From contig CDRNVI010000185.1 in NCBI GenBank assembly GCA_977017575.1, positions 1 to 64,000 on the forward strand: a stretch of 64,000 nucleotides of DNA, written 5' to 3'. Origin of the DNA: Paramoeba atlantica. Its lineage: Eukaryota > Protista > Discosea. Below the pieces are notes generated by a model that made no database searches, was not told the DNA's origin, and saw nothing but the letters and a program-made list of their open reading frames with translations. The position numbers were made by a program, and so were the translations under genes. Below, in pieces: positions 32,341 to 53,328 of this stretch (positions are counted from its first letter, which is position 1; the number at the start of each line of letters is the position of its first letter).

Positions 32341-34608
32341 ATGGACCAGGAGAATGTAGGACAACCCAAAGGGGAGAATGGTGAATGCTCAACAAGGTTT
32401 ACCTCCCCCGAAACGACGCTCACGTCCGCTGTGGTTGCGGCGGCGATTCGAAATGTTTACCATTCAACACATCTTTCCCGCCTGCTTCGTGTTCTCCCCC
32501 CGTCGCTTCGCTCGAAACCTCAAATCTTTCTCGCGCTCTCGGAGCGAAGTACGAACCCGGATGCTATACTCCGTGCGCTGCGGGAGTTAAGAGAAGCAGG
32601 CGAGAGCCCCCCGCCAGACTCGATTCCACGAATTTTGAATAAACTCCCGCCTAACTTATGGAGAGAGGCCGTGGAGGTAGTAAGGACAGTTTTGAGAAGA
32701 AGCGAGGCAAATGCACCGTCCTCTTCTTCGATTCCTTCCACTCTTCCATCCAATTGTTTTTTTCCCAACACTCCGCTTTCATTGGAATGTTTTGTAGTGT
32801 TACTGCGGCTAGCCGCTCGTGCAGGAGCGCTTTCTTTTGTAGAGAATCTCGGGAAGGATCTTTCTTTTGTCAACGGCACGGCTTCTTTATCCAGAAGTGA
32901 GCCAGAGGCTATACAGTTTCCCGAAGCATTCTTCTCTGATGCCACTCGAAGCTCCATTCGCACTTCCTTATGTGTGGCGAAGTTTACCCAAAAAGGATTA
33001 GCTCCGGAACGGAGTCCTACCCGACTGAACGTACGACGAATGGAGAAACACCGAGAGATGCGAGAAAAAGTCAATGCGGTGCTATCGCGAAACAAAACAA
33101 CAGAAAGTAGCGCATCTCAAAGTACGGAAAATATGAATTCAAGAACAGACACCACTTTTTCTTCTCTTCCGAAAAAAGAGGAGAATACGAATGAATTTAC
33201 AGCGTCTGATGTAGAATCAGAATTTGAAACTGAACTCGCTCGAGCTCAAGAAAACGCCTCGCAAACCGTGGAGCAGCGTTACGATGCGGAGCGTCGTGAA
33301 GCCCAACGTATCCACCCTGCAGTTTCGGAACTCCAACAAATGGATCGGGAACACATCCCGCTGGACCCCTCTGGTCCGCATCAAATCATCCAGGCCCTGA
33401 GGGAGCAAGGGGACTGGCCGACGGGGCTCTATCTCGTCGAGACCCGAGCGGAATTTCGTAACTCGCGCCAAGCGATTCAAGGCGTAATCCAGTCCATGGC
33501 CCGGGAGCATCAGGCCACCGCATTGATCGATTTCACGGAAATTTTACAGCGTGAAGAGGCAGGCGGAGAAAAAGAGGCAATAAATGAGGAAGAAAACGCA
33601 GGAAGAGGAGGAAAACTTGAAAAGCAGGATAAAAGCAAAGGAAACGCCCCCCCTCCTCTCCGTCGTAGTCTTGCCCTTGTGTGCTCCATGTTGCATGCAC
33701 ATTTAATGTGTAGTAATCTTCACGCCGCCTACGATATCTATTTTGAGTATATCCGACCCTTACTGTGTGCTTCCAATCAAGTTCAACCCGAAATCCGGGG
33801 GTGCTCAGCAACAGAGGAGGAAGCCGTAATGAATAGCAACTCGCCTCAACAAATCTTTCCCTCCAATTGGATGTGTTTCGGTCTCAGTCTCGCGGCCACC
33901 ATTTTAATGAAGCAACACACCCAGGCGTTGGATATTGCCCATCACATTGCCCGTGTCGCTCTCCCTGCGGTCATCGAGGAGGCAAAAAAAGCAAACGAAC
34001 AAATTAACACAGAAAAAGGAAAAAGGGAAGGGCCGGATACGGAGAGCAGTCCCAACAAAAACGAAAATCCTCCGATTTCTTCTTCCAAACAAAACGTTAC
34101 GCCTTCAACAACCTTACCCGAAGAAGAGAATTTAGATTCCATCGACGGGACAACAATCGGAAACCAATACCTCCCAGGAGAAGCAGCGGAAGAAGAAGAT
34201 TCTTCCTCCCTATCTTCACCTTCCCTATCTCCTGGATCCTATCCTAAAAAAGACGTGACCACGAGTGCCTTACTCGAGCGCTGTGGTCTCCCCGATGTTT
34301 TGCTCTTCCCGGGCTCTGAGGAGAACGCTTTAAGGGACTCTTCTTCCCCTTCGAGGGCCTCTGCTCTCTCCCCCGAGCGGTTTCTGCATAACCTCTGCGC
34401 CACCTTCGCGCGTCACGTCCACCGGGACTGGATGAAGGCGCTGCGGGAGCTCGAGAGCGTGTTCCGGGAGGCGGGGCTGCGGATCCCGGACAGCGCCCGC
34501 GCCACGTTCCTGCAGATCAGCGCCAGCTTCTCCAACGAGTCCTACCATCAGAAGAATATCTTGGATCGGTTTCTGCAAGAGGAAACCGAGGGGAGAGAGA
34601 AAAGATGA
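32341..34608 (+). CDS. N-terminally truncated copy of the 844-aa protein (755 aa)
   Basis: Starts at internal MDQENVG; otherwise nearly identical. Confidence 0.65.
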   Translation: MDQENVGQPKGENGECSTRFTSPETTLTSAVVAAAIRNVYHSTHLSRLLRVLPPSLRSKPQIFLALSERSTNPDAILRALRELREAGESPPPDSIPRILNKLPPNLWREAVEVVRTVLRRSEANAPSSSSIPSTLPSNCFFPNTPLSLECFVVLLRLAARAGALSFVENLGKDLSFVNGTASLSRSEPEAIQFPEAFFSDATRSSIRTSLCVAKFTQKGLAPERSPTRLNVRRMEKHREMREKVNAVLSRNKTTESSASQSTENMNSRTDTTFSSLPKKEENTNEFTASDVESEFETELARAQENASQTVEQRYDAERREAQRIHPAVSELQQMDREHIPLDPSGPHQIIQALREQGDWPTGLYLVETRAEFRNSRQAIQGVIQSMAREHQATALIDFTEILQREEAGGEKEAINEEENAGRGGKLEKQDKSKGNAPPPLRRSLALVCSMLHAHLMCSNLHAAYDIYFEYIRPLLCASNQVQPEIRGCSATEEEAVMNSNSPQQIFPSNWMCFGLSLAATILMKQHTQALDIAHHIARVALPAVIEEAKKANEQINTEKGKREGPDTESSPNKNENPPISSSKQNVTPSTTLPEEENLDSIDGTTIGNQYLPGEAAEEEDSSSLSSPSLSPGSYPKKDVTTSALLERCGLPDVLLFPGSEENALRDSSSPSRASALSPERFLHNLCATFARHVHRDWMKALRELESVFREAGLRIPDSARATFLQISASFSNESYHQKNILDRFLQEETEGREKR

Positions 34609-35640: not shown

Positions 35641-36673
35641 TCCTGTACGTACTTGATGTGTGCAATTAGATTGATTGTTCAATTGTATTCGATTGATTGG
35701 CTGTGTAAATTGGAGGGGCGGGGGCCTTGTTTACTGTTAGATAAATGATTACTGTTAGATAAATGATACTGTTAGAGAAATGATTAGAAAAATACTAATA
35801 CTTCTCCGAATTTTCCTGTTAAAAGTTGATATTTGAGGGGCTGCGGGTGGCGTCCCGAGAAACCGCGGTATACGATCGGCCCCCCGAGGCCTGGTCCGAT
35901 AGTAATGTATACCTAAAAAATCTTTGATTTTAGTATTCACGTATTCATGTAGTATAGTATTTAGTAGTATTTACGTATTCGCGTATAGTATTCACGGGGT
36001 TTTCAACATTTTTCCCGCCTCTATCACCAAAAACTTGGAACAAGTAATTTATGCGCTCTAAAGAATGCCAACCATCATCAAGGAATCACATGAAGCGTTT
36101 TTTGCGCTTTCATTCTTTTTGGCAACCTATGGAGACACGCGAATACAGCTGAATGTAGCAGCTGAATGAACCATTTAAAAAAGCCTCTTGATGGTAGGTT
36201 TTTGAATTTCGTGTACTATGCCCCCCTGCTTATAAGTTCCCCCTACTCAGGTACGCTTATGAGTTCCTTTTTCTGGTGAATGCTTTTGTACCCACATTTT
36301 GCGAAGCCTTTTTTTACATGTGACAAAATGTCATAAATTTCTACTCTACGTCAGCCTGCTCTACAGGTTCGTTCACTGAGCGGATATTTGTTTTGGATCC
36401 AGTTATCATCTGGTATGCTTAAGAGTCCTTTTTCTCAAAACCGGGGAACTCATAAGCAGGGGGGGTATAGTATTTTGTTTTATTATTTTTACCCTTGCTT
36501 TCGTAAGCAGACCGATTTTTTTTTCATCACGCTTTTTTTCAGAATACTTTTTTTTATTTTTCTTAAAAGAAATTGCGCAAAAAAAAGCGGCAGATAACTA
36601 GGTACAGTAGTTCCCTTGACCGAGCAATTTATTCAACACCTCTTCCAATTTCTTTACAGCGTTTCAAAGTTCA

Positions 36674-37297
36674 ATGACTTACTCCTTTTTAATGATATGT
36701 CCGCTACGTGCATCGGATGTACACTCTTCAACGCATCCCCGGGCAGCGAAAATAAGGTCTGTTTCCGTACCGCAAGAATACAATTTGGCAAGACTTGTTG
36801 AAAGCGCAGATAAAAAGCATCGTACCTGGGACACCAACACACCTGTCTGTGAGTGGTATGGCATTGAATGTTGTGAGAAGAAACGAGTTAAAGCAATAAG
36901 CTGGCGTTTTGCAGATTTAGGATCGTTAAATTGGAAATATTTGCCGCCAAATTTAGAGTCTCTAGAGGTGATGAAAGCCCATCTTCGTGGTGAACTTCCA
37001 CTAGAGATGTTTCCCCCATCTCTCGTATACATTTATCTGTATTACAATAAGTTAACAGGTAATCTCGTCCTTTTGCGACTTCCACCTTCATTGGAGGTTT
37101 TTGACGTTCAAAGCAATCAGTTTTTTGGCATCGTAGATTTTTCGTTACTTCCAACAGGTTTGTCCGAGCTGACGCTGTCTTGGAACAGTGACCTCAAAGG
37201 TGCGTTCGATGTGGGAATGTGCAGTCCGAGTTTGAGCTACGACGTTCGGCGTACAAACATCACGGTATCGAATGGATGTTTATTTCGAGAGGTCTAG
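36674..37297 (+). CDS. Leucine-rich repeat protein (copy 2)
   Basis: Identical translation to 31224-31847. Confidence 0.8.
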   Translation: MTYSFLMICPLRASDVHSSTHPRAAKIRSVSVPQEYNLARLVESADKKHRTWDTNTPVCEWYGIECCEKKRVKAISWRFADLGSLNWKYLPPNLESLEVMKAHLRGELPLEMFPPSLVYIYLYYNKLTGNLVLLRLPPSLEVFDVQSNQFFGIVDFSLLPTGLSELTLSWNSDLKGAFDVGMCSPSLSYDVRRTNITVSNGCLFREV

Positions 37298-37790
37298 CGT
37301 GATGAGGATGATGAGTGCAATGATGAGGATTCTTTCGAAAATGATTTTTTTCAGAATTCCGCCTCGCTTGTCGTTTGGCTTGTCGTTTGGCCGTATTAAT
37401 TCGACGAGTGTAAAATGGGCATAAAATGTGAAAGAAATTCTGGGTCAAGATGGGTGAGAATGCACCAAAATAGGGTAAAATAATTTTTTTTTGGTTTCTC
37501 TGTTTCGTTTGAAAGAAACGTTGGGCATATGTTACAGGCTTTAAAAAAGTATTTTTGACTCATTTTATTCATCTGGCATGCGTTTTACTTTAATTGAGAG
37601 GGGGGGGTATATAATGCTTCTGTTCTGAAATTCGCCCCCCCCGCCCTGATCAGTTCCACAGCGCTCTTTCGGGCCGACATGGGGGCTGCGTTGGCCTGGC
37701 AGCAACAAAACGACAGAGCTGACAGCACTGGTAAATGTACTCGATACGCTTTGCCCCGGAGTAGAAAAAAGCGAAAAAAATACGCAAAGT

Positions 37791-40058
37791 ATGGACCAGG
37801 AGAATGTAGGACAACCCAAAGGGGAGAATGGTGAATGCTCAACAAGGTTTACCTCCCCCGAAACGACGCTCACGTCCGCTGTGGTTGCGGCGGCGATTCG
37901 AAATGTTTACCATTCAACACATCTTTCCCGCCTGCTTCGTGTTCTCCCCCCGTCGCTTCGCTCGAAACCTCAAATCTTTCTCGCGCTCTCGGAGCGAAGT
38001 ACGAACCCGGATGCTATACTCCGTGCGCTGCGGGAGTTAAGAGAAGCAGGCGAGAGCCCCCCGCCAGACTCGATTCCACGAATTTTGAATAAACTCCCGC
38101 CTAACTTATGGAGAGAGGCCGTGGAGGTAGTAAGGACAGTTTTGAGAAGAAGCGAGGCAAATGCACCGTCCTCTTCTTCGATTCCTTCCACTCTTCCATC
38201 CAATTGTTTTTTTCCCAACACTCCGCTTTCATTGGAATGTTTTGTAGTGTTACTGCGGCTAGCCGCTCGTGCAGGAGCGCTTTCTTTTGTAGAGAATCTC
38301 GGGAAGGATCTTTCTTTTGTCAACGGCACGGCTTCTTTATCCAGAAGTGAGCCAGAGGCTATACAGTTTCCCGAAGCATTCTTCTCTGATGCCACTCGAA
38401 GCTCCATTCGCACTTCCTTATGTGTGGCGAAGTTTACCCAAAAAGGATTAGCTCCGGAACGGAGTCCTACCCGACTGAACGTACGACGAATGGAGAAACA
38501 CCGAGAGATGCGAGAAAAAGTCAATGCGGTGCTATCGCGAAACAAAACAACAGAAAGTAGCGCATCTCAAAGTACGGAAAATATGAATTCAAGAACAGAC
38601 ACCACTTTTTCTTCTCTTCCGAAAAAAGAGGAGAATACGAATGAATTTACAGCGTCTGATGTAGAATCAGAATTTGAAACTGAACTCGCTCGAGCTCAAG
38701 AAAACGCCTCGCAAACCGTGGAGCAGCGTTACGATGCGGAGCGTCGTGAAGCCCAACGTATCCACCCTGCAGTTTCGGAACTCCAACAAATGGATCGGGA
38801 ACACATCCCGCTGGACCCCTCTGGTCCGCATCAAATCATCCAGGCCCTGAGGGAGCAAGGGGACTGGCCGACGGGGCTCTATCTCGTCGAGACCCGAGCG
38901 GAATTTCGTAACTCGCGCCAAGCGATTCAAGGCGTAATCCAGTCCATGGCCCGGGAGCATCAGGCCACCGCATTGATCGATTTCACGGAAATTTTACAGC
39001 GTGAAGAGGCAGGCGGAGAAAAAGAGGCAATAAATGAGGAAGAAAACGCAGGAAGAGGAGGAAAACTTGAAAAGCAGGATAAAAGCAAAGGAAACGCCCC
39101 CCCTCCTCTCCGTCGTAGTCTTGCCCTTGTGTGCTCCATGTTGCATGCACATTTAATGTGTAGTAATCTTCACGCCGCCTACGATATCTATTTTGAGTAT
39201 ATCCGACCCTTACTGTGTGCTTCCAATCAAGTTCAACCCGAAATCCGGGGGTGCTCAGCAACAGAGGAGGAAGCCGTAATGAATAGCAACTCGCCTCAAC
39301 AAATCTTTCCCTCCAATTGGATGTGTTTCGGTCTCAGTCTCGCGGCCACCATTTTAATGAAGCAACACACCCAGGCGTTGGATATTGCCCATCACATTGC
39401 CCGTGTCGCTCTCCCTGCGGTCATCGAGGAGGCAAAAAAAGCAAACGAACAAATTAACACAGAAAAAGGAAAAAGGGAAGGGCCGGATACGGAGAGCAGT
39501 CCCAACAAAAACGAAAATCCTCCGATTTCTTCTTCCAAACAAAACGTTACGCCTTCAACAACCTTACCCGAAGAAGAGAATTTAGATTCCATCGACGGGA
39601 CAACAATCGGAAACCAATACCTCCCAGGAGAAGCAGCGGAAGAAGAAGATTCTTCCTCCCTATCTTCACCTTCCCTATCTCCTGGATCCTATCCTAAAAA
39701 AGACGTGACCACGAGTGCCTTACTCGAGCGCTGTGGTCTCCCCGATGTTTTGCTCTTCCCGGGCTCTGAGGAGAACGCTTTAAGGGACTCTTCTTCCCCT
39801 TCGAGGGCCTCTGCTCTCTCCCCCGAGCGGTTTCTGCATAACCTCTGCGCCACCTTCGCGCGTCACGTCCACCGGGACTGGATGAAGGCGCTGCGGGAGC
39901 TCGAGAGCGTGTTCCGGGAGGCGGGGCTGCGGATCCCGGACAGCGCCCGCGCCACGTTCCTGCAGATCAGCGCCAGCTTCTCCAACGAGTCCTACCATCA
40001 GAAGAATATCTTGGATCGGTTTCTGCAAGAGGAAACCGAGGGGAGGGAGAAAAGATGA
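37791..40058 (+). CDS. N-terminally truncated 755-aa copy (unit 3)
   Basis: Identical translation to 32341-34608. Confidence 0.65.
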   Translation: MDQENVGQPKGENGECSTRFTSPETTLTSAVVAAAIRNVYHSTHLSRLLRVLPPSLRSKPQIFLALSERSTNPDAILRALRELREAGESPPPDSIPRILNKLPPNLWREAVEVVRTVLRRSEANAPSSSSIPSTLPSNCFFPNTPLSLECFVVLLRLAARAGALSFVENLGKDLSFVNGTASLSRSEPEAIQFPEAFFSDATRSSIRTSLCVAKFTQKGLAPERSPTRLNVRRMEKHREMREKVNAVLSRNKTTESSASQSTENMNSRTDTTFSSLPKKEENTNEFTASDVESEFETELARAQENASQTVEQRYDAERREAQRIHPAVSELQQMDREHIPLDPSGPHQIIQALREQGDWPTGLYLVETRAEFRNSRQAIQGVIQSMAREHQATALIDFTEILQREEAGGEKEAINEEENAGRGGKLEKQDKSKGNAPPPLRRSLALVCSMLHAHLMCSNLHAAYDIYFEYIRPLLCASNQVQPEIRGCSATEEEAVMNSNSPQQIFPSNWMCFGLSLAATILMKQHTQALDIAHHIARVALPAVIEEAKKANEQINTEKGKREGPDTESSPNKNENPPISSSKQNVTPSTTLPEEENLDSIDGTTIGNQYLPGEAAEEEDSSSLSSPSLSPGSYPKKDVTTSALLERCGLPDVLLFPGSEENALRDSSSPSRASALSPERFLHNLCATFARHVHRDWMKALRELESVFREAGLRIPDSARATFLQISASFSNESYHQKNILDRFLQEETEGREKR

Positions 40059-40133
40059 AGAAAAAGGGGAGGGGGTCTAAAAAATAAGAAGTAATAATTT
40101 TTTTTAGTATAAAGGTTGTAAAAAAAATCGGTA

Positions 40134-41090
40134 GTGTTTCCTCATGAAAAAGAAAACGCGGACTTTGGTAAACGAAAAGCTCTTGCGCGAAATGAAATGT
40201 ACGCGACAATCGGGAGGTATACTTGTGTAGCTACTGTATCATGTGGTACGTACAAAGGTGAAGCCTATTCTTTTAGTATTGATAGTTGGCTTTTTTTGCA
40301 AGACTTAGATAGCCACATACAGAGACACCTTTTGTTTATTCCGATTTCTTTTTGCCACCTGACAAAAATGTTTGAGTTCTGTGCATTAGCCTGTGCATTA
40401 CGTGCAGCTGAGGAACAATCTATAAGTCGTCCTTGTGCAGCGAAGGTGAGCTCTATTACCGTGCCGCAAGAGTACGATTTAATAAGACTTATTCAAAATA
40501 TGCAGGAAAGACCCCCTAGCTGGAACACCGACACACCTGCATGCGAGTGGGAAGGCGTTGAATGCGACGAGAAGAATCAAGTTAAAGAATTCAGTTGGTG
40601 TTTTGAAAACCTAGGATTCTTAGTTTGGAAATATTTGCCACAGAGTTAAGTTTCTTTTCGCATGCAACATGGCCATCTTCGCGGTGAACTTCCCTTGGAA
40701 GTGTTTCCTCCGAACCTAACGCAAATATATTTGTATGCGAATCAGTTAACCGGTCATCTTGACTTGCTCCAGCTCCCACCCATACTGGAGGTCTTGGATG
40801 TCGAAAAAAATCATTTCCATGGCACCGTCGATTTCTCATCACTTCCGACAACTTTGGAGGAACTAAAGCTGTCGAGCAACAGCGAACTCGAAGGTGCGTT
40901 TGATGTGGATATGCACAGCCCTGATTTGTATTACGACTTTCTGCAAACAAACATTACAGTCTCGGACGGATGTCGAATTCGAGAGCTCTACTTTGATGTG
41001 GATGAAGATGACGTTGATGAGTATGAAGATGAGGACGTTGATGAGGATGAAGATGAAGAGGACATGCATGTACATGATGATTTGGATTAG
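40134..41090 (+). pseudogene. LRR gene with in-frame TAA (copy 3)
   Basis: Same translated ORFs as copy 1. Confidence 0.75.
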
Positions 41091-41381
41091 TCCTGTACGT
41101 ACTTGATGTGTGCAATTAGATTGATTGTTCAATTGTATTCGATTGATTGGCTGTGTAAATTGGAGGGGCGGGGGCCTTGTTTACTGTTAGATAAATGATT
41201 ACTGTTAGATAAATGATACTGTTAGAGAAATGATTAGAAAAATACTAATACTTCTCCGAATTTTCCTGTTAAAAGTTGATATTTGAGGGGCTGCGGGTGG
41301 CGTCCCGAGAAACCGCGGTATACGATCGGCCCCCCGAGGCCTGGTCCGATAGTAATGTATACCTAAAAAATCTTTGATTTT

Positions 41382-42834
41382 GCCATAGGGATCCAGGGGG
41401 CAATCGCCAGAGTGGCGGCCAACTTCACAGGCACGCTGAAGGTCTGGGCGTACCTGGATGACGTCACCTTTGCTGGTGAACCCAAGGTTTGCGCGGAAGC
41501 CCTAGAGGCCCTCCGCGAGGAGCTGAAGCATCTTGGGCTACGGTTAAATACTGCTAAATGCAAAGTAGCTACCAGACGCGAGGACCTCTTCTCCGAGTTC
41601 TCCGGATCTCGCATGGTCCACTCCCCCGGGGGGGTCAAATTACTGGGGGCCTTCATCGGGGTGTCGGAGGCTAGGGAGGAAGAATGGGTGCTTTCCAAGG
41701 CCCCCAAGGTAATCTCCTTCCTGGGGAAACTCAAGGACATTAGCAGGCAATGCGCCTTGCCCCTTTTAAGACTCTGTGGGAGTCCTCGATGGAACTACAT
41801 CGTAAGGACCCACGACCCCCCGGTCACTAAAGTGGCCAATACCCAGGTCGACAAAGCCGTCCTGGCATGTGCTGAGGCCTTGCTCGGGGGGATGGGCTCC
41901 TTGGGAAAAACGCCGTTCTCCAATAACCTTTTCACGGCAGATTTCCTGGGGACCATCCCCTTCGCGCACAAGGCGGAAGACATGCAGGCCAAGGCGAAGA
42001 ACGCCCTACAGGGCCGACCCCAAGGCATGTCAGCCAAGGAACAGCGGCGCAACCTCTGTGAGGCCGCGTTGGGGAAAGCCCCGACGGCCACCCAACTGGT
42101 CTGCATGCGACAGACCCAGAACATTCACTCCACTAAGTGGATGAACGCATGGCCCAACAGGCCGGAGTATTACATGCGGGACCCGCAGTGGGAGACTGCG
42201 GCCCGTCTCCGGTACTTGGTCGCCCCCACCTCGGAACCTGAGCTCCAGTGCGTGTGCGGTGCAACCCTCCGCAATGAGGAGTTTTGCGTACACGCACTGG
42301 ATTGCAAAAAGGTTAAGGGGAAGACCCAGGCCTCCCGCCACAAGGAGGTCAAGGAAACCTTTCGAAACCTTCTTGTGCAGTATGGTTTCAAACCGGACCT
42401 ACACGAACCGAGGTTCGACAATGGACGGGGGCCCGACATATGCTTCCAGCTGGGACGGAAGACTGCCCTAGTTGATGTCACCGTGGTGAACCCATTGGCC
42501 CCGTCCTACGTGGAGAAGGAGGCCGCAGAGCCCTCTCATACCCTGAGGATGGCAGAGGCCAACAAGCGGCGCTCACACGATGAGATGGCGACCGCCCGAG
42601 GGATGGAATTTTACCCCTTGGCATTCACCACGTATGGGATCCCGGGCCCAGAGACTTTGAACTTCCTAACCAAGGTGGCCCGGGCTCACTCATCCGACAA
42701 GAACGGATGCATGTCCCACCTTCTGATGGCCATAGGGGTGGCCATCCAGAAAGGTAATGCCCAGATTGTACAGGCGGCAGTACAGGACTGGTACCGCCGC
42801 GGGGTACGAGGCTAGCTGGGCGATGGGATTAGGG

Positions 42835-42868
<34 letters not shown>
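41382..42868 (+). mobile_element. 5'-truncated RLE non-LTR retrotransposon, lineage A
   Basis: Open frame from 41382: WAYLDDV, CVCG...HALDC knuckle, RHKEV, GPDI...VDV (PD-D), EANK; 20-nt 3' UTR; poly(A) 42835-42868. Confidence 0.9.
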
Positions 42869-42871
<3 letters not shown>

Positions 42872-42990
42872 GTATACCCCCCCCCAATGGACCTACTTGG
42901 TTCGTCTACTGGGTCAAAATATAGAGGCAATGCCGCGTTTCATACTTCTCCCCCCTTATTAATCGCAAAAAAAAAAAAAAAAAAAAAAAA
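42869..42990 (+). repeat. ~100-nt 3'-terminal module T plus poly(A)
   Basis: CTCGTATACCCCCCCCAATGGACCTACTTGGTTCGTCTACTGGGTC...TTATTAATCGC(A)n; related copies at ~52828, ~53203 and ~58198. Confidence 0.85.
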
Positions 42991-43573
42991 CTCCTTTCAC
43001 GAGACCAAGCGCGAAACGATCTCCTAACAGATCTGAACGTGACGCTAATGCGTTCTCAAGCCAGGATGATGGTTTCGCGCATCCGCGTAGAGGACCCAGC
43101 GGATCCTTTGGTAGAGGCTTAAGCCTCTACTGACAGTCCAGTTTCAGCACGAAGACGCCATAATATCCAGGACGGGTGCTGGCCGGGTCGACAGAGTCTA
43201 TGCTCACGCCTAGCCCGCGAGGGCTAGGTACCCCAAGTGAGGTAGTACACGGGTAGTGAATCTCCTCCCCGTCGGCCAGCATCCTGTTTCGCGACCGTGT
43301 CGCTGTCGACACAGGCCCGCGCCTGCGCCCTCCCGTATAACAAGGGAAGGGTCCACAAGTCAGGCCGTGGAGAGGTCGAAAGACCCGGTCCGGAACGCGC
43401 GAATGGTTGAGGAGCCGCCTGCAGGCCGGGTGAGGCGAAGCTGAGGGAGACCTTACCCCCCTGAAAAGTTGAAAAGTTGGGTAGGGGAAAGCAGGAAAGT
43501 AGGGAGAAAGGTGGGAAAAGTATGTCAAGAGGTGAGAAAGAGGAGAAAGAGAGAGAAAAATTTTCTTTATTTG

Positions 43574-43604
<31 letters not shown>
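42991..43604 (+). mobile_element. 5'-truncated retroelement, lineage B (ORF end, structured 3' UTR, poly(A))
   Basis: LLTDLNVTLMRSQARMMVSRIRVEDPADPLVEA* is homologous to the C-termini of the long ORFs; poly(A) 43577-43604. Confidence 0.85.
43174..43406 (+). ncRNA. Conserved structured 3'-UTR RNA element (copy in lineage B)
   Basis: Multiple helices with compensatory changes relative to the copy at 47619-47856. Confidence 0.7.
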
Positions 43605-43623
43605 CGATAAAGATTTAAAATTT

Positions 43624-43655
43624 AACGATAAAGATACAGTTTCTGTACCTTGTTG
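43624..43655 (+). other. Spliced-leader (mini-exon)-like sequence at the 5' end of element C
   Basis: AACGATAAAGATACAGTTTCTGTACCTTGTTG has the euglenozoan SL core GATACAGTTTCTGTAC and ends in TTG; no GT donor follows. Confidence 0.8.
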
Positions 43656-43696
43656 AAATTTTTTTACGCAGTATTCTCTCGGGGCCCAGCTCTTTT

Positions 43697-46600
43697 ATGA
43701 CGCAAACCAATACTCCTCAGAGCCCCGCACGCTCGAACGAGGACCACCCCTCATCCCATATGAGTGCAAAGGAAGGAACTCTCAGCGTAGGCGCTCTCGC
43801 CGACGAAGAACGTGCCCACTCCCTCGGCAGTTGGGACCAATTCCAAGGAAACAAGCATTTGATTCGCGCTGTCAGCACATACGACGAACAACTCTACACT
43901 ACACCAATCCCGGAGAATATTCCTAAGGAATGGTTGGAACGCGCACGTCACATCTCCCAGGAAAAGGAAACCCCAGACACGGGCCACGTAGAGGCCGAAG
44001 ACGAGGAGATGCAGCACTGTGGAGTGAGAAGGCAGAAAATTACTCACGAGGCTACACCCACATCAAAGATCCCCGATGAAACTCGGACGCTCAAATCCGC
44101 AGTGAAGGATGCTCTTTCCCACCAAGGTCGAAACACTTCCCCATCGAAAGGAGTGACCAAAGCGGACTCGCGCTCGTCAAGGCGAACACCGGAGCCCCGG
44201 ACATATTTCTCTTCACCGCGACACGCCGCAAACCAAAATAACTTCGCTGAAAAGACACAAACAAGAGAAGAGACTCGGGAATGTCCGGCCATGGGATGCA
44301 CTTGGAGAAGTCTGCCGCACGGAGGGTCTTGGCAAGCGTTTTATAACCACGTCGCGTGTCGCCACGGAAACGGAGTTCCCGCTACCTGGTGGGATGCAGA
44401 AGGCCGATTTCTTTGCAACTTATGCGGGCGCCATTATGACATCAACAAAAGGGAAGCTCATCCACAAGCCTGCAAAGGGAACGTTGCGAACCCCCAAATC
44501 CCATCGCGCGCAGCACACTCGAGCGTCCCAAGCCACCTTCCGGGGACTCAAACTCATCACTCTGAACTTCCCTCGCTATCCTCTATCTGCACGCTGCGCC
44601 TGAACACTTGCAAGGACGTACCTCCACGTTGCCGTCAACTGTGGGGAGAAATTATCACCAAAGCAGCCCAAAACGCAGTCACCGAAAACTCTACAGCCGC
44701 GTGGACCCTATTCGCCATGCTCCCCAAGTGCTTACTACCCGCCCCACACCGAGGAGGACGTAAGAACCACACAACTTACGCATCATACGTCCAGAAGTGC
44801 ATGAACCGATGGCTCGCGCAAGATTATGTCTCCCTATGGAATGAAGCAGTAGACAACGCACTCAAGAAACAATCTGTAGCCCCTACAACCGTTCACGACG
44901 AAGAGGAAAAGGCAGCTATCCGAGCAGAGCTTCTAGCTCGACAAGGCGAGTACTCTAGGGGTATGGCTGCACTCACGGCGGATGCTATGGCCCCTGACGA
45001 CGAAGATACACTCCTCAAACTTCAGAGCAAGCACCCGCCCCGACATCCAGACAGTGACATCATCGACTATACGCCTCCGCCCACAGCGCCCCTAATAATG
45101 GATGAACGCGTGGTAGCGAAAACTATCAAGAGCTTTCACCGGGGATCCTCGTCCGGAACCATGGGTTTACGACCCGAGCACTTGCAAGCTGTACTCCTGG
45201 CGCACGTAGATAACACCGTGAAACCCCTTACTGCCCTTAAAAACCTCGTGAATCATCTACTAGCCGGGAAAGCACCCCTAGAGGTACAACCATATTTTGC
45301 GGGAGCCAGACTTTGCGCGCTTAAAAAGGGCGAAAATGACGTCCGCCCCATAGCAGCGGGAGAAACGATACGTCGATTGGTAAGCAAAGCGGCTTGCAAT
45401 GCAGTGAGGAGCAAAGCCAGGGAATTTTTTAAGGGACTACAGTTCGGCGTCGCGACACCGGCCGGTTCGGAACGAATAATTCACACTTGCCGGCACGCAA
45501 TGACAATTCATACGGACAACCCCGACATGGTATTATGTAAAGTCGACCTAAGCAACGCATTCAACAACGTTAGCAGAGCAACTTTCTTGAAACTTGTAGG
45601 CGATCATTTTCCGGAATTGTTCCCCTGGGCTAGCTGGTGCTATACGACAACTAGTGCTTTGACCTATCGTTACCACACACTCCTTTCGGATGAAGGCGTC
45701 CAACAGGGCGATCCCCTGGGACCACTTTTCTTTTCACTGGTCTCCTTGGAACTTGCAAAAGAAATCTATCACCAGGCCGACCTGGACTTGCAGCTATGGT
45801 ACCTAGACGACGGGATTCTCATTGGCAGGGCAGAAGACGTCAGGAATTCGTTGGATACAATCGCCAGAGTAGGTCCGCGATGGGGCCTATATCTGAACAT
45901 GTCCAAGTGCGAAATAATCACCCCCCCTGCCTCGGCTAACGTTGTAACCATATTTCCGGACATACCCGACGCCAAAATAAACGTGTGCGGTAACTTTAGT
46001 GTCCTAGGAAGCCCAATTGGGTCCCCTGAGTACTGTACTGAATATCTGCTGACACACGCGGTTGAGCCCGCCGAAATGGCCCTTGATGCCATAACCAGAA
46101 TCCGGGACCCCCAGGTAGCCATGGCGCTAATTCGACAATGTGCTGGATTCTGCAAATTGGTACATGCTCTACGAACGACGCCCCCGCAATCAGTTATGAA
46201 CCTCTGCAAGCGGCTCGACGACTTCCTAATGCACGCGGTCGAATCCACTCTATGTCCTTTGCCTCCCTCCGCACGCGCCCAAATTCAGCGCTTGAAAAGA
46301 CACGGAGGTTTCGGTTTAAAATCGTCGACCGTGCACGCATCCTCCGCTTACGCCTCCTCTGTAGTTTTCGCGGCGGCCACGGACTCATGGGATGCTTCAG
46401 AAGTGGAGGGCTTTCTACAATCGATTGAAGACGTGAACTCGAAAGTTGGTATCAGTCTACTCGACTCAAACGGACTCGTGCGTTCCATCCCGCGCCATAA
46501 ATGTGAAGAACTCTCCCCCAAAGCTCGCTTCACCAAGAGATCTCGCGAGGGAGAAACCAGACATCCCTTTGAACCCGCAAATCCGCCTTCCCTTCCTCGT

Positions 46601-47563
46601 GACCGCGCATTGCCTCATTCCGAAGACTTTCCACACGATACAAACCCCCTTTACGCATCCGAAGATTGCGTTGACGCGGATCCACCCGACTGGGCAAGTA
46701 ATAGCGTCCCCCGCCAAAAAGACATAAGTTACGCGATCTCTGCCACAGAGTTCTCGCACGCATATGAAAACGCCGACGCCCGGACTCGCGCACGCTGGGC
46801 TTCTCAGTGTGGTAAAGGAGCAAGCAGCTGGGCGTTCGTAACTCCTTCCAGAGACACGGGCCACGCCTTTAACCCCACAGAATTCCGCATCCTATCCAGC
46901 TGGTGGTTAGGTGTGCCCGTGTACGGGGAAGAAGGTACATGTCCCAAGGGGAACTGCACACTCCCATTGGACATACACGGCGATCACGCTCTCACATGCA
47001 AGCACGGGGACGGTATCATCGGCCGTCACAACGCCTTGGCCGATCACTTTGCCGATACTTGCAGTAACGCACGCCTAGCTCCCCAACGGGAAAAAAGCCT
47101 CGGGAACCGGGGCCCCGGAGGCGCTCTGACTAGACCCGGGGACGTCTTCCTTCCGAGTCTCTTCCTCGGGAAACCTATCGTGCTTGACTTCGCGGTCACT
47201 CACGCCCAGCAATCTAAATACACGGACACAGTCCGAAATGCTAGCTGGGTGGCCGCGGGGTCCTTCGCAGAGCATTATGCCTCAGAGCAGAAAGTCCGAC
47301 AACGCCGTGAATCTGAAGATGCCGGAAGCGATTTCACAGCTATGGTGGTCGAGAGCTATGGCTCTTGGAGTGCCAGTGCTTTAGCCGTTCTCCGGAAGGT
47401 TGGAGAACGAAGGGCAAAAGCGTCCAACGGTATCTTGACAGACGAGGCCTCTACGCTCCGTCTCGTGACCGACATGAACGTAACATTGATGCGTTGCCAG
47501 GCACGCATGATGATTACGCGCCTGCCGGCTGTGGACCCCTTGCCCCCTTTAATCGAGCAATAG
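43697..47563 (+). CDS. Full-length CRE/SLACS-type retrotransposon ORF: LsmAD-like, zinc fingers, RT, zinc knuckle, RLE (lineage C)
   Basis: WDQF..N...STYDEQLYTT; CPAMGC..H....H and CNLC..H...C; KVDLSNAFN, GVQQGDPLGP, WYLDDG; C-x4-C..DHALTC, RHNALAD, RPGDV..LDFAVT, VVESYGSW. Confidence 0.93.
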   Translation: MTQTNTPQSPARSNEDHPSSHMSAKEGTLSVGALADEERAHSLGSWDQFQGNKHLIRAVSTYDEQLYTTPIPENIPKEWLERARHISQEKETPDTGHVEAEDEEMQHCGVRRQKITHEATPTSKIPDETRTLKSAVKDALSHQGRNTSPSKGVTKADSRSSRRTPEPRTYFSSPRHAANQNNFAEKTQTREETRECPAMGCTWRSLPHGGSWQAFYNHVACRHGNGVPATWWDAEGRFLCNLCGRHYDINKREAHPQACKGNVANPQIPSRAAHSSVPSHLPGTQTHHSELPSLSSICTLRLNTCKDVPPRCRQLWGEIITKAAQNAVTENSTAAWTLFAMLPKCLLPAPHRGGRKNHTTYASYVQKCMNRWLAQDYVSLWNEAVDNALKKQSVAPTTVHDEEEKAAIRAELLARQGEYSRGMAALTADAMAPDDEDTLLKLQSKHPPRHPDSDIIDYTPPPTAPLIMDERVVAKTIKSFHRGSSSGTMGLRPEHLQAVLLAHVDNTVKPLTALKNLVNHLLAGKAPLEVQPYFAGARLCALKKGENDVRPIAAGETIRRLVSKAACNAVRSKAREFFKGLQFGVATPAGSERIIHTCRHAMTIHTDNPDMVLCKVDLSNAFNNVSRATFLKLVGDHFPELFPWASWCYTTTSALTYRYHTLLSDEGVQQGDPLGPLFFSLVSLELAKEIYHQADLDLQLWYLDDGILIGRAEDVRNSLDTIARVGPRWGLYLNMSKCEIITPPASANVVTIFPDIPDAKINVCGNFSVLGSPIGSPEYCTEYLLTHAVEPAEMALDAITRIRDPQVAMALIRQCAGFCKLVHALRTTPPQSVMNLCKRLDDFLMHAVESTLCPLPPSARAQIQRLKRHGGFGLKSSTVHASSAYASSVVFAAATDSWDASEVEGFLQSIEDVNSKVGISLLDSNGLVRSIPRHKCEELSPKARFTKRSREGETRHPFEPANPPSLPRDRALPHSEDFPHDTNPLYASEDCVDADPPDWASNSVPRQKDISYAISATEFSHAYENADARTRARWASQCGKGASSWAFVTPSRDTGHAFNPTEFRILSSWWLGVPVYGEEGTCPKGNCTLPLDIHGDHALTCKHGDGIIGRHNALADHFADTCSNARLAPQREKSLGNRGPGGALTRPGDVFLPSLFLGKPIVLDFAVTHAQQSKYTDTVRNASWVAAGSFAEHYASEQKVRQRRESEDAGSDFTAMVVESYGSWSASALAVLRKVGERRAKASNGILTDEASTLRLVTDMNVTLMRCQARMMITRLPAVDPLPPLIEQ

Positions 47564-47618
47564 CACGATGACGGATGTGCAAGATGGGCCGCTCAGCCGG
47601 AACTCGAACAGCTGGTCC

Positions 47619-47856
47619 GGATGCTGGTCGATGCCGGCAGGGTCTATGCTCACGCCTAGTCCGCCAGGGCTAGGTACTCCAAGTGAGGTAGGACATGGGT
47701 AGGGAACTTTGTTCCTCCCCGTCGGCCAGCATCATGCTCCGCGACCGTGCCGCTGTCGGCACAGGCCCATTGCTTGCGCCCTCTCGTACAACAAGAGAAG
47801 GGTTAACAAGGTAAGCTGGGAGAGGTCGAAAGACCCGGTCCGGAACGCGCGAATGG
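47619..47856 (+). ncRNA. Conserved structured 3'-UTR RNA element (lineage C variant)
   Basis: Same helix architecture, with covarying pairs. Confidence 0.7.
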
Positions 47857-48243
47857 TTCGGGAAAAGTCTGCCCCTCCTAACCGAGGGAGACCTTACCCT
47901 CCCTGGAAAGCTGGTAAGATTGGTAAGGGGAAGTGGGTAAGATGGGAAAGCATGTATTTGCTAGTTATATATTTTGCTGGTTTTCAAAATGGGGGGAAGT
48001 GAGGGAAAGAAGTTGAGCAAGTAGGAAAGTAAGTGAGAAAGTCATACCGTACATACATATATAAAATTAGAACTCGTACTCTTCCCCCCCTATTATCTGC
48101 AAAAAAAAAAAAAAAAAAATAGATGGTTTCTTTGAGGGGTGGAGATAAGGGAGAGAAGCGGGCGAAGTTGATAAGGGCGAAGTAAAGTAAGTAGGAAAGT
48201 AAGTAAGAAAGTGATACCAAAAAAAAAAAAAAAAAAAATCTTT

Positions 48244-48924
48244 AACGATAAAGATACAGTTTCTGTACCTTGTTGAATTATTTCCCCTTTTCTTCCATAC
48301 ACCATCTTCCAGACCATGGGAGGGCACCCCCCTCAAATACACTCCTTTTTGTCGGCATCCCCCTTCCCCGTCTCGTCCCATCACCCCCCTGCGCCGCATC
48401 CCCCCACATCACCCTCCCTCCGCAGTGCGCTTGCCCCCCTGTTGTGTTTCTCTCTCGCGTCCCCCACCCCCGTGTCAGCAGCCAAAAGTATACAATACTT
48501 GCTCACGGGGTGGGGGCAGAGTTCCTGGCAGATGGGCCCGTGCTTCGCCTCCTCTCGCCCCTGCGTCAGTCCCCCCGTGTCTCTCTCCGCGCTCTTCTCC
48601 CTCGGCGTGACGACGTCTTTGTGTTTCGTGGCCTCCACGTCTCCCACCCTCGTACGGCAACCAAAAGTATTTATTACTGCTAACGGGGTGGGAGCGGAGG
48701 TGCAGGACCATACGGGCCTGGGTGCATGCGGATCGGTGAGTGGGGTAGGGAGTGAGGGAAGGGAAGTACGAGAGGGCTAAGAGGAGTAGGTGTGGAAAGT
48801 ATGGGGAGTAAGGGAAAGCGAAGGGCCGTAAGTGTGGAAATTGTGGAAAAGTTGGACTCCATACATAAAAAGTTAGACTCAATACTATTCCCCCCAATTA
48901 TTTGCAAAAAAAAAAAAAAAAAAA
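48244..48924 (+). mobile_element. SL-headed, poly(A)-tailed, apparently non-coding SINE-like retroposon
   Basis: SL at 48244-48275; pyrimidine-rich then purine-rich body with an internal ~60-nt duplication; ends TACTATTCCCCCCAATTATTTGC(A)n, like the autonomous elements. Confidence 0.7.
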
Positions 48925-49067
48925 GGGCAAAGTTTGGAAGGCGCGGATGGATGCTCGGGGGGGGGGAAGTGAGGGAAAGAAGCGGGTGAAGTCGGAAAGT
49001 CGCGGATGGTTTCTTTGAGGGGTGGAGATAAGGGAGAGAAGCGGGCGAAGTTGATAAGGGCGAAGTA

Positions 49068-49099
<32 letters not shown>

Positions 49100-49103
49100 A
49101 AAA

Positions 49104-49715
49104 CCTTTGCGGAGCGCTACCGAGAACAAGAGAAGACAACGGGAAGAGGCTAACACGGCTGGGTACAAGTTCGCGGCAATGGTAGTAGAGTCCTATGGCG
49201 CCTGGAGTCCCAGCGCCATGGCGGTTCTTAGGGAAATTTCAACTAGAAAGATGGCGAACTCAGGGGATACCCTCCCTAAAAGCGATGCCTTGCATCACCT
49301 CCTTTCATCTCTCAACATTACCCTCATGAGGTCGCAAGCTCGCATGCTTGTATTACGATCCCCAGCGGCGGTCCCTGACACAGTGCTCTTAGGTTACGGA
49401 AAAGAGGAGTAGGAGCTCAGTAGGAAAGTGAAGGAGTCGGTGTCAAGGGAGGAGGCCTCGTTTCTATTTGCTGGTTTTCTCGGGTGGTTTCTTTTTGGGG
49501 CTTTGGGTATTCGTTTTTTGGGGAAGGTTTTTTTTGGGGGTGGGAACGGGTTCTTATTTGCTGTTTTTTGGGCCGTTTGCTCGGTTGAACATTCTTTTAC
49601 TTTTCGTACAGTTGCTTGTTTCTATTCTGAGCCTAACTTTAAAAAAAAAATGTGAAATTGCTAATTTGATTGCTTGTTTACAAATCATATAAAAAAAAAA
49701 AAAAAAAAAAAAAAA
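49104..49715 (+). mobile_element. 5'-truncated lineage D copy
   Basis: Near-identical to 52245-52830 (…VVESYGAW…YGKEE*); poly(A) 49691-49715. Confidence 0.88.
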
Positions 49716-49974
49716 CCCGTGTCGCTGTCGACACAGGCCCGCGCCTGCGCCCTCCCATATAACAAGGGAAGGGTCCACAAGTCAGGCCGTGGTGAGGTCG
49801 AAAGACCCGGTCCGGAACGCGCGGATGGATTGGGCGTGGATTGCTTCCTTTTTTATTATTATTGTTATCAGAATCATAAATAACTTAAGGCAGGTTGAAT
49901 TACTAGTTTTGGGCTACAACATGTGAAATTGCTAATTTGATTGCTTGTTTACAAATCAAAAAAAAAAAAAAAAA

Positions 49975-52947
49975 GACTTTGAATCGTAAGAAACGTGCTG
50001 CGCAAGCAACAAGCCTAGAAGACGAGGGGAAGAAAGCGTGTCTTCGCGCGGAGCGACTGGCCCGCGACGGAGAACTTTCTCGCGCCATGACCGCACTGAC
50101 TTCTTCGCCGCTAGCACCAGACGACGACAACACGTACGCCAAACTTCAGGCCAAACACCCCCCACGAATCTCCGCATCCACAACATCCCCCAGCTTAACT
50201 CCGGAAACAGAACCACTCAAAGTCACCGAGGAAGAAGTCGCAGCTGCGCTCTCAACCTTCCACAGAGGATCATCAGGTGGCGCACTTTGCCTCCGCCCAG
50301 AACACGTGCAAGCGGCAATGCAATATCACAATGACGGGCACACAAATCCACTGGGCACGCTCACAAATTTCACCAACCATATGCTCGCTGGGAAGTTACC
50401 ACTCGACGTTCAAGACCACTTTGCCGGAGGAAGGCTATGTGCTTTGGAAAAGGGAGAACACGACGTGCGCCCAATAGCCGCTGGAGAAACGCTCCGCCGT
50501 CTGGTGAGTAAAGTGGCCTGCCTATCAGTAAAAGCGCGAGCCCGCAAAATTTTCAAAGGCCATCAGTACGGGGTAGCCACGCCCGCCGGGGCCGAGCGAG
50601 TTATACATCTGTGTCGCCAGGCCTTTGCTGCTCGCACGGAAGATGACGACTTTGTTCTCTGTAAAATCGACCTACGTAATGCCTTCAACCAAGTTTCAAG
50701 GGACTGGTTCATAGCACTAACACGCGAGCATTTCCCCACGCTTACTCCTTACGTCGAATGGTGCTACACTTCGGAAAGTAAGCTTACCTTTGGAACACGC
50801 GTTATTAAATCTCGTGAGGGTGTCCAGCAAGGGGACCCCTTGGGCCCTCTTCTTTTCTCGTTAGTCATGAGGGAAGTCGCCTCAGAAATTCACGCAGCAG
50901 CCCCCAAATTAGACCTAAACCTCTGGTACCTGGATGATGGCGTTTTGGCTGGCACTTCCTGTGATGTGCGACACGCGTTCGACGTTATCGAAATGAAGGG
51001 TCCACAATGGGGCCTACACCTCAACGCTGCAAAATGCGAGATTATTACCCACCCAGCATCTTCTCATCGTTCTTCTGTTTTTCCCGATCTCCCTGGCCCT
51101 AACAAAAACCTCGAAGGCAATTTTTACATTCTGGGAAGCCCCGTTGGATCGCCAGAGTTTTGTCGTGAATATCTCGTCAACAATGCAGTCGAAATGGCAG
51201 AAGATTCTCTGGACGCTATAACGCACCTCGAAGACCCCCAGGTTGCCTTATCCCTCATTCGTCACTGCACTGGCTTCTGCCAGATGGTTTACTCCCTACG
51301 AACAACCCCAACATCTGAACTTCGGGATCTCTGTCGGCGCTTGGACGACGCCGTGCAACGCGCGGTAGAGAATTTTTTCCGTCCTCTGACCCCCGAGGCC
51401 CGCCGTCAAACACAACGAGACAAGCGATTTGGCGGGTTAGGACTCCGTTCCGCGGAAGAGCACTCTACTTCAGCCTATATCGCCTCTGTCGCATTTGCAT
51501 CGGAGCTAGATCGCTGGGACCCCACGGAGGCAGAAGGTTTCGAAGAAGCCGTAAGCGATGTCAATAAAAGGGTGGGGAAAGACATCGTAGACATTCAATC
51601 AGGGAGAATACCGAAAGGTTTCGCCTTGTCATCCACTCCGCCTTTCAGTAAACGTGGCATTACAGAATCCAGTACCGAATCAGTAATCCCTCGGCAACGA
51701 GATCTAAGCGATGCAATATCATCTCACGAGTTTCATCAAGCACTCTCCCTCGCTGACCCACGTACGAGGGCTCGATGGATTTCGGAAACGGGGCACGGAG
51801 CAGCAGAATGGGCTTTTGTATTGCCGTCGAAAAAGAACGGCCACGCTTATACCCCAACCGAGTTTCGGACTCTGGTACGTTGGTGGCTAGGGGAGCAAAT
51901 ATATCCGGGTCCCCGATCTTGTCCCATGGAGAAGTGCACCCAACCGTTGGGTCCTGAGGGCGATCACGCATTGGCTTGCAAAAGTGGACATGGTATCACC
52001 TCGCGGCATAATGCCCTGGCCGCAGAATTTTCTTCTGAATGTTCTAAGGCTGGGTTCACTACCCAGAGGGAAATGAGCTTGGGAAACAAGGGGCCGGGGG
52101 GCGCCCTCACCAGGCCTGGTGATGTCTTCATCAAAAATTTCGGGCTTGGCGAGGGTCTTGTGCTTGACTTTGCCGTCACCCATGTACAGCAACAAAAATA
52201 TACGGACTCAGTCCGTGACGCTAACGGGGTGACGGCCGGGTCATTTGCGGAGCGCTATGCTACCGAGAACAAGAGAAGACAACGGGAAGAGGCTAACACG
52301 GCTGGGTACAAGTTCGCGGCAATGGTAGTAGAGTCCTATGGCGCCTGGAGTCCCAGCGCCATGGTGGTTCTTAGGGAAATTTCAACTAGAAAGATGGCGA
52401 ACTCAGGGGATACCCTCTCTAAAAGCGATGCCTTGCATCACCTCCTTTCATCTCTCAACATTACCCTCATGAGGTCGCAAGCTCGCATGCTTGTATTACG
52501 ATCCCCAGCGGCGGTCCCTGACACAGTGCTCTTAGGTTACGGAAAAGAGGAGTAGGAGCTCAGTAGGAAAGTGAAGGAGTCGGTGTCAAGGGAGGAGGCC
52601 TCGTTTCTATTTGCTGGTTTTCTCGGGTGGTTTCTTTTTGGGGCTTTGGGTATTCGTTTTTTGGGGAAGGTTTTTTTTGGGGGTGGGAACGGGTTCTTAT
52701 TTGCTGTTTTTTGGGCCGTTTGCTCGGTTGAACATTCTTTTACTTTTCGTACAGTTGCTTGTTTCTATTCTGAACCTAACTTTAAAAAAAAATGTGAAAT
52801 TGCTAATTTGATTGCTTGTTTACAAATCATATACCCCCCCCAATGGACCTACTTGGTTCGTCTACTGAGTAAAAATATAGAGGCAATGCCGCGTTTTATA
52901 CTTCTCCCCCCCTATTTATTGCAAAAAAAAAAAAAAAAAAAAAAAAA
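49975..52947 (+). mobile_element. 5'-truncated RLE non-LTR retrotransposon, lineage D (RT plus RLE intact)
   Basis: The frame is open from the poly(A) junction to 52555: KIDLRNAFN, GVQQGDPLGP, WYLDDG, DHALAC, RPGDV..LDFAVT. Ends with module T plus poly(A). The listed ORF start at 49937 lies in the previous module. Confidence 0.9.
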
Positions 52948-53328
52948 CACAGGCCCGCGCCTGCGCCCTCCCACATAACAAGGGAAGGGTTCACAAGTCA
53001 GGCCGTGGAGAGGTCGAAAGACCCGGTCCGGAACGCGCGAATGGATTGGGTCTGGATTGCTTGTTTTTATTTTTACTGTGTCTTGTTTGTCGTATATACT
53101 TAGGGGAGATTGAATTGCTAGTTTTGGGCTGAGAAAAAAGAAAAAGAAAATATACTTCTGTGGAAATAAAAAGAATTGCTAATTTGATTGCTTGTTTTAA
53201 ATTCATATACCCCCCTAATGGACCTACTATGTACTTGGTTCGTCTACTGGGTCAAAATATAGAGGCAATGCCGCGTTTCATACTTCTCCCCCCTTATTAA
53301 TCGCAAAAAAAAAAAAAAAAAAAAAAAA

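Follow-up and report, generated by a model that had tools for sequence, protein, structure and literature searches.

A conserved two-domain structured RNA in the 3′ UTRs of CRE/R2-like retrotransposon lineages

The closest described counterpart of the RNA reported here is the 3′ UTR of R2 elements, an RNA that is indispensable to recognition and to reverse transcription and that is recognized mainly by its structure (PMC12203849). A second is the 3′ tail of the stringent LINEs, as in eel (UnaL2) and zebrafish, whose ORF2 proteins recognize their own 3′ tail RNA and whose tails act as a mobilization ticket shared with partner SINEs that use one machinery (PMC1636434, PMC4176376). At the opposite end of the element, the APE-type retroposons of the trypanosomatid ingi/L1Tc clade carry Pr77, a 5′ sequence of ~77 nt with an RNA-level function that combines a promoter with an HDV-like ribozyme (PMC4035085). 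Elements of the CRE clade have been reported from Bodo saltans (PMC4728078, PMC12278014), and our search of the literature on CRE, SLACS and CZAR found no description of an element such as the one considered here.

The window analyzed in this study, a stretch of DNA of 64,000 nucleotides, contains a 233-nt block at 43174–43406, referred to below as the module, that recurs in the 3′ UTRs of several retrotransposon lineages. Like the R2 3′ UTR (the Rfam family R2_retro_el), it is a multi-helix fold in the range of ~230–250 nt situated in the 3′ UTR of a single-ORF element of the restriction-like endonuclease (RLE) type, and in both the structure is conserved more than the sequence. The two differ in several respects. 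There is no sequence or covariance-model similarity between them, and the R2_retro_el covariance model was unmatched in the window. In the copies examined the module is followed by a variable tail of ~200–260 nt and poly(A), whereas the R2 UTR abuts its target, and with this tail downstream the module does not itself form the RNA 3′ end at which target-primed reverse transcription starts. Moreover, one version of the module, ~97% identical, is common to many lineages via recombination.

With the stringent LINE tails the module has in common that it is a conserved 3′ structure present in different elements (PMC1636434, PMC4176376), but those tails are single short hairpins at the extreme 3′ end with short repeats behind them, whereas the module has two domains and is internal to the UTR. 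The sharing is also of another kind, as the module is common to at least nine lineages of autonomous type and one chimeric lineage, and no SINE partner carrying it was seen; the ~1.1-kb units that contain it are 5′-truncated elements and not SINEs. Pr77 resembles it as a short conserved module present across several kinetoplastid retroposon families (PMC4035085), but the module is found at the 3′ end, in RLE-type elements, and signs of cleavage are absent. A structured RNA near the end of an element, with an exposed self-complementary motif and frequent copy-choice recombination, also recalls the dimer-initiation and packaging signals of retroviruses. This likeness is an analogy only, given that the elements here are non-LTR with no known capsid and that the pairing is a candidate.

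The Rfam 15 cmscan suggested at first pass as a check on novelty returned no match at gathering thresholds across the whole window, and at E ≤ 10 the region 43100–43620 gave only three chance matches to unrelated families. The module is an abundant, strand-specific structured RNA without an Rfam family. It was absent from RT relatives at ~40% and ~31% identity on metagenome and genome contigs (L083, L084 and L085), among which the 40%-identical metagenome relative, L084, has a poly(A)-tailed 3′ UTR of unrelated sequence; contig L134 ends at the gene. A conserved 20-mer gave 45 matches against metagenome contigs, approximately the chance expectation, and none of these exceeded 19 bits with the model. 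One locus that does have a type A copy, L133, is apparently from the same or a very near organism. Its module, at 390–624, is upstream of a VIPER/TATE-like RT/RNase H element (2501–8642) with a faint integrase match, and the two are probably neighbors in a repeat cluster.

Copies of the module and their host elements

BLAST of the module against the window identified five full and two 5′-truncated copies, all on the plus strand, and the seven copies listed in the first-pass annotation were thereby all found at their positions by BLAST and alignment. Short motifs of the module likewise have seven occurrences in the window, compared with 0.4–0.8 expected. Copy A (43174–43406), of type A, scores 283.6 bits against model R1; it belongs to the 3′ UTR of a 5′-truncated element of O1 type, and behind it come a GA-rich tail, type DN2, and poly(A) (43407–43604). 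Copy C (47619–47856), which is of type C, is 84% identical to copy A, scores 258.7 bits with model R1 and starts 56 nt past the stop of the ORF at 43697–47563. The other full copies are of type A: copy D (53512–53744, 98% identical to copy A) shares its upstream flank, though not its tail, with copy A, copy E (57401–57633, 96%) is 43 nt past the stop of the ORF at 53975–57358, and copy F (57815–58047, 96%) is in a 5′-truncated unit behind the poly(A) of the element to which copy E belongs. The two partial copies, at 49717–49828 (model positions 122–233) and 52947–53044 (positions 136–233), were designated 5′-truncated retro-copies based on both starting directly behind a poly(A) run.

Four ORFs of the window that are located ahead of module copies carry an RVT_1 domain, and a restriction-like endonuclease signature was apparent in all four. 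The O1-type RT/RLE ORF (41412–42815, plus strand) is 5′-truncated, has the endonuclease motif KPD...DVTVV and is 24–30% identical to the other three over ~150 residues. Those three, also on the plus strand, are CRE-like, are 51–57% identical among themselves and carry RPGD...LDFAVTH...K behind a C-terminal zinc knuckle. They include the following: ORF 43697–47563, which has an LsmAD match in addition to RVT_1 and is associated with a type C module; the RT ORF 49937–52555, which represents a third lineage with 52–57% amino acid identity to the other two; and the RT ORF 53975–57358, from a further lineage, which is associated with a type A module. The sole solved structure matched by sequence for the 1288-residue ORF was that of the Bombyx R2 protein (R2Bm, 8gh6). 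Based on the RVT_1 domains, the restriction-like endonuclease signatures and the match to 8gh6, we assign the module hosts, on sequence grounds, as RLE-type (CRE/R2-like) non-LTR retrotransposons.

In at least nine CRE-like lineages, whose proteins are 48–65% identical to one another over the last ~460 residues, the module starts 14–80 nt past the stop codon. This position behind RLE-type ORFs bears out the original description, which placed a structured RNA of two domains in the 3′ UTRs of divergent retroelements; the module is confined to such UTRs. The elements open with a spliced-leader-like sequence immediately behind the preceding poly(A), and such starts point to a bodonid kinetoplastid.

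Genome-wide, a 33-nt motif from the 3′ end of the module has 522 occurrences with up to two mismatches in the 45.7-Mb assembly and a motif from the domain-1 hairpin has 377, and reversed-pattern controls for both had none. The greater number of 3′ ends is a 5′-decreasing gradient of the sort typical of LINE copies. The covariance-model search of the genome gave at least 150 matches above 273 bits and was saturated by type A. With more than 500 loci to its account, the module belongs in the repeat and ncRNA annotation of the assembly. Flanks were compared for 85 distinct full copies from 83 sources (82 genome loci and the window). The upstream flanks formed ~20 clusters and the downstream flanks three main tail types, and all 85 distinct flanks were retroelement-derived, with host gene context not seen among them. 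For seven type A lineages, mean identity in the 200 nt upstream was 53.5%, versus 50.8% for shuffled sequence and 97.6% for the module, which is consistent with the earlier claim that conservation is confined to the structure. The edges of conservation are sharp and coincide with the two closing helices.

In the region from 41382 to 58313 of the window, poly(A)-tailed retro-copies are stacked head to tail, and each unit, whether full or 5′-truncated, starts immediately behind the poly(A) of the preceding one. Loci L026 and L086 have such stacks as well, and the same habit was observed in the metagenome relative (L084:4760–4800); it is compatible with template jumping and also with targeting of the end of the unit before. 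The stack lies within, and interrupts, a tandem array of ~5.45-kb host units (31224–34608, 36000–41300 and 58391–63700), each with ORFs of 207, 755 and 171 amino acids (the ORF set is found at 31224, 36674 and 59065). The 171-residue ORF has an LRRNT_2 match above the Pfam cut-off and the 207-residue ORF a weak match below it, and the array segments 36000–36299 and 58391–58690 are identical. The element behind copy A opens, at 43603–43655, with a spliced-leader-like sequence after a stuttered partial copy (AACGATAAAGAT repeated), and a similar leader-like start is present at 48240–48275. A unit of ~660 nt at 48244–48924 runs from leader to poly(A) with neither an RT nor the module, and has a GA-rich tail end and terminal motif in common with the module-bearing elements; judging from this unit, a separate signal common to these elements may reside in the tail end.

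Secondary structure and sequence types

Single copies of the module gave minimum free energy (MFE) z-scores of −4.2 and −4.0 relative to shuffled controls. The consensus fold was determined with RNAalifold from 42 distinct copies of types A and C, and replaced a fold obtained from five copies only, in which domain 2 was mispaired. It consists of two closed domains, the first a three-way junction and the second a multi-helix domain with a GNRA hairpin. In copy A, on the plus strand, domain 1 spans 43175–43283, and P1 (43175–43184 with 43274–43283; GGTGCTGGCC/GGCCAGCATC) closes a junction bearing a long P2/3–P4 hairpin (P2/3, 43198–43207 with 43237–43245; P4, 43208–43216 with 43221–43229) and the P5 hairpin (43249–43259 with 43263–43272). 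Domain 2 spans 43285–43399, and here P6 (43285–43296 with 43387–43399) closes a junction bearing the P7 hairpin with its CUGU loop (43297–43302 with 43307–43312), a long P8–P9 arm (P8, 43316–43326 with 43359–43370; P9, 43327–43334 with 43344–43352) and the GNRA hairpin P10 (43374–43385). Nearly all helices in the first-pass annotation were recovered in this fold and were 99% base-paired across the 42 copies. These included P1, CTCAC/GTGAG, the CCTAG hairpin, ACCG/CGGT, the GTGTCG-CTGT-CGACAC hairpin with its T/C–A/G covariation, CCC/GGG with its change to CTC/GAG, and the GGTC-GAAA-GACC hairpin. The pairing of TAC(C/T)C with GGGTA that had also been proposed was discarded, as it is in competition with P5 and type G lacks it.

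The MAFFT alignment of the 42 copies, which was not fitted to any structure, had 99.2% of its pair cells paired, versus 20–45% when partners were slid, and five pairs in it were changed on both sides. Since MAFFT misaligns part of domain 1 when type G is included, a model-fitted alignment was used for the set with type G. In this alignment, which by its nature leans towards the structure, 98.8% of cells paired and ten pairs were changed on both sides, a number reached in 0 of 500 shuffles and to be compared with 0–3 in the slid controls. A poly(A)-preceded fragment that was a source of spurious U–A pairs was left out of this count. Between the representatives of types A and C, 38 columns differ, 17 of them in stems, and the 12 changed pairs are all still paired (five double changes, seven wobble changes and none broken); the rate of change is 11% in stem columns and 23% in unpaired columns. 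The compensatory changes between A and C and the ten both-side pairs that include type G support a structure kept by compensatory change, with all of the covariation coming from three sequence types in one genome.

Approximately 9% of paired cells are G–U, which would be A–C mismatches on the antisense strand, and model R1 scored the antisense strand at ~18 bits versus 284 for the sense strand. In terms of these models, the G–U pairs and R1 scores point to the sense RNA as the folded strand. Plain MFE gave no strand discrimination, the antisense strand being nearly as stable. The one candidate RNA run (X5) yielded no alignments to the stretch, a result that is neutral as to transcripts and RNA ends.

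Four sequence forms were distinguished: type A, which is the commonest; type C, at 84% identity to A, whose subtypes are 91–96% alike; one A/C intermediate; and the divergent type G. The last of these was found via loose ends in the read layout, scores 160 bits versus ~284 for type A, and is represented by ~24 copies with a GAGA loop. Its identity to types A and C is 57–61% in domain 1 and 77–85% in domain 2. In type G, P1 is kept with G–C replaced by A–U, P4 is kept with C–G replaced by U–A, P5 is rebuilt from other sequence into a perfect 9-bp helix, and the P10 loop is GAGA instead of GAAA, with the GNRA class retained. The CGCGCGAATGG end, whose first bases are part of the closing helix of domain 2, had been considered invariant at first pass, a description that does not extend to type G or to one C subtype.

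Some copies depart from these forms. In a type C subfamily with a partial duplication of domain 2 (G000:C69:434348–434676 and C43:63558–63886), positions 1–228 are followed, ~20 nt on, by a repeat of positions 158–238 with 85% identity. The P10 loop is GATA in four copies and GGTA in one (G000:C16:425554, C26:225914, C29:464460, C59:101604 and C39:209905), and these are either decayed copies or further types. Strong lineage-specific hairpins, unrelated in sequence, were also observed 20–60 nt ahead of the module at 43108–43133 of the window (an 11-bp stem with a TTAA loop), L086:1370–1392 and L066:1462–1485; their position and statistics were inconsistent among the lineages compared.

Exchange of the module between lineages

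One upstream lineage can occur with different tails, there being three alternative tail types genome-wide. Within type A, SNPs at the 5′ edge of the module track the upstream lineage and SNPs at the 3′ edge track the tail, and in the four-gamete test all four combinations were present for 50 of 91 common SNP pairs, which places breakpoints inside the module. In view of this free reassortment of SNPs and of the three alternative tails, we conclude that the module passes between lineages, either by recombination or by template switching. The module type is also discordant with the ORF phylogeny, in that ORFs that are 81% identical carry A and C, and the ORF bearing type G is 85% identical to a lineage carrying A.

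Relics ahead of the module bear on the same question. The O1-type 3′ UTR contains, at 42991–43116 on the plus strand, the remains of a CRE-like ORF end (its last ~40 codons) with 50–55% amino acid identity to the ends of ORFs 43697–47563 and 53975–57358, and this relic in front of the module leads us to conclude that the O1-type lineage acquired a CRE-like 3′ end. In the UP0 lineage, a relic of a G-like domain 1 precedes a complete type A module. Such relics were located at L026:1375–1455 and, in both L003 and L005, at ~1388–1442, within the CRE-like ORF end and ~60–110 nt ahead of the complete type A module. We take the G-like relic to be the footprint of a replacement.

We attribute the identity of the module across lineages largely to repeated horizontal spread of one version, besides selection for the fold. 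It is less usual for a cis-element to sweep horizontally through at least ten retrotransposon lineages in one genome, and the sweep is relevant to the question of how rival LINE families come to share one another's machinery or to steal it, and to the origin of chimeric elements.

Possible roles of the module

The reading that we favor, with a probability of roughly 0.55, is that the module is a cis-acting 3′-UTR element for recognition by the RT or ribonucleoprotein (RNP) of RLE-type (CRE/R2-like) non-LTR retrotransposons. According to this reading, the sense transcript would fold into the two closed domains, starting 14–80 nt past the stop codon, and the fresh RT/endonuclease protein would bind the fold to give an RNP, the RNA of which would serve as template for target-primed reverse transcription beginning at the tail and poly(A). 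With many lineages sharing one handle, copy-choice template switching or recombination could then move type A, as the version with the greatest success, and the tails around, so that differences within the module would be erased and the flanks would go on diverging. We infer the binding of protein and the role in retrotransposition by analogy. The idea of RT recruitment put forward at first pass fits the location of the module directly behind the stop codons of RLE-type ORFs and the precedent of R2 (PMC12203849). It stands in a weaker form than a strict requirement for RNA copying, given that the ~660-nt passenger from spliced leader to poly(A) is found in the same stacks without the module. 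Short 5′-truncated units that consist of tail only also occur in the stacks without it, and are uninformative owing to their 5′ truncation.

If recognition by the RT is correct, the module would be, in the literature searched, the first RNA recognition element to be defined for retrotransposons of CRE type, which are associated with the spliced leader, and its hosts would provide, beside R2, a second and independent RLE-type RT that recognizes a large folded 3′ UTR. As a compact RNA of 233 nt with three natural variants and built-in compensatory mutations, it offers material for work on binding, structure and retrotransposition in kinetoplastids.

Since RTs that are only 24–30% identical use a module that is 97% identical, trans-mobilization or a host factor would fit equally well. 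We consider it unlikely, but worth weighing, that the fold attracts RNA-binding proteins of the host or withstands its nucleases, and in this way stabilizes, exports, localizes or translates the retrotransposon mRNA, from which any lineage would gain whatever its RT. The internal position of the module in the UTR, away from the priming end, the module-less units and the very different RTs give this explanation its standing: a 96–98%-identical module that serves ORFs with 24–30% identity is easier to account for with a host protein as the partner, and the captured LsmAD-like domain in one lineage hints at dealings with host mRNP factors. On the other side, none of the 85 distinct flanks had a host gene context, known stability and export motifs were unmatched in Rfam, and the position behind the stops of RT ORFs, together with the R2 precedent, favors the protein of the element itself.

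A further set of explanations depends on an unpaired 8-mer in domain 1 (43187–43194, plus strand) that is complementary to 43303–43310, the loop and 3′ arm of P7. The 8-bp complementarity is present in all three variant pairs (GTCGACAG/CTGTCGAC, GCCGACAG/CTGTCGGC and GCCGGCAG/CTGTCGGC, the last with one G–U), and the 8-mer is identical in type G despite the 57–61% identity of domain 1. The pairing would cross P1 and compete with P7, and the computed energies are −13.6 to −15.7 kcal/mol for the duplex versus −6.2 to −8.3 kcal/mol for the P7 hairpin. The long-range pairing of GTCGACAG with CTGTCGAC proposed at first pass is thus compatible with all three variants, but its statistics are weak, with ~0.4 such 8-bp matches expected by chance within 233 nt by our own estimate, and we regard the complementarity as a candidate for a pseudoknot, a switch or an intermolecular contact.

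Building on this candidate contact, it is conceivable, though doubtful, that the lineages share the module as a "passport and pairing" RNA, in which the contact between the 8-mer and P7 co-assembles the RNAs of unrelated lineages on one RT. Were this so, it would drive copy-choice recombination, sweeps of the module across lineages and head-to-tail stacks, and would give non-LTR elements an equivalent of the dimer-linkage and packaging signal of retroviruses. A shade more doubtful still is the explanation of the module as a hub for RNA–RNA pairing or dimerization, in which the 8-mer would pair with P7 either in another RNA molecule or, acting as a switch, in the same one, and two templates would be juxtaposed, leading to template switching and so to chimeric elements and head-to-tail stacks. 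The complementarity in all three variant pairs, the unchanged 8-mer of type G, the greater computed strength of the duplex relative to P7, the recombination breakpoints that fall within the module and a 6-nt palindrome core in two of the three variants all agree with such a hub. Conversely, the number of matches expected by chance tells against it, the GCCGAC variant is not palindromic, and the one position that covaries does so with its partner in P7 as well, and represents one A-versus-C split.

It is very improbable that the module has no RNA function and is a stretch homogenized by recombination (gene conversion), with structure incidental to a GC-rich sequence. Exchange among copies is indeed frequent and the antisense strand is almost as stable, but all 12 changed pairs between A and C are intact, five of them by double change, stems change half as often as loops, and the GNRA class and P5 are kept in type G with a different sequence; in addition, homogenization alone leaves the sharp boundaries at the two closing helices unexplained.

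We give least credence to a new self-cleaving ribozyme or 3′-processing element, as was also raised at first pass: although the large compact fold, GNRA loop and conserved unpaired nucleotides would suit one, and the Rfam models for hammerhead, HDV-like, twister, twister-sister, pistol, hatchet, hairpin and VS ribozymes were unmatched even at E ≤ 10 (in line with the earlier remark that known topologies do not fit, and leaving room for a new class), the full copies with flanks keep the module and then the tail, which implies that the copied RNA was uncut, poly(A) is at the tail end wherever the tail was read through, the truncated copies have 15 different starts between 31 and 210 (31, 33, 45, 47, 74, 86, 90, 111, 122, 136, 152, 164, 166, 184 and 210) with no hotspot, and cleavage in the 3′ UTR would strip the tail that primes reverse transcription.

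A minor feature was observed at the 5′ boundary of those modules that start with GGAT, in which the preceding 8–9 nt repeat the 5′ strand of P1 (CTGGTCC/G ahead of GCTGGTCG). Examples are at 47609–47618 of the window and at L056:1740–1750 on the minus strand, and in one lineage the repeat covaries with the module (GCCGGTCC with GCCGGTCG). The repeat could be an alternative P1 strand or the mark of microhomology at a template switch.
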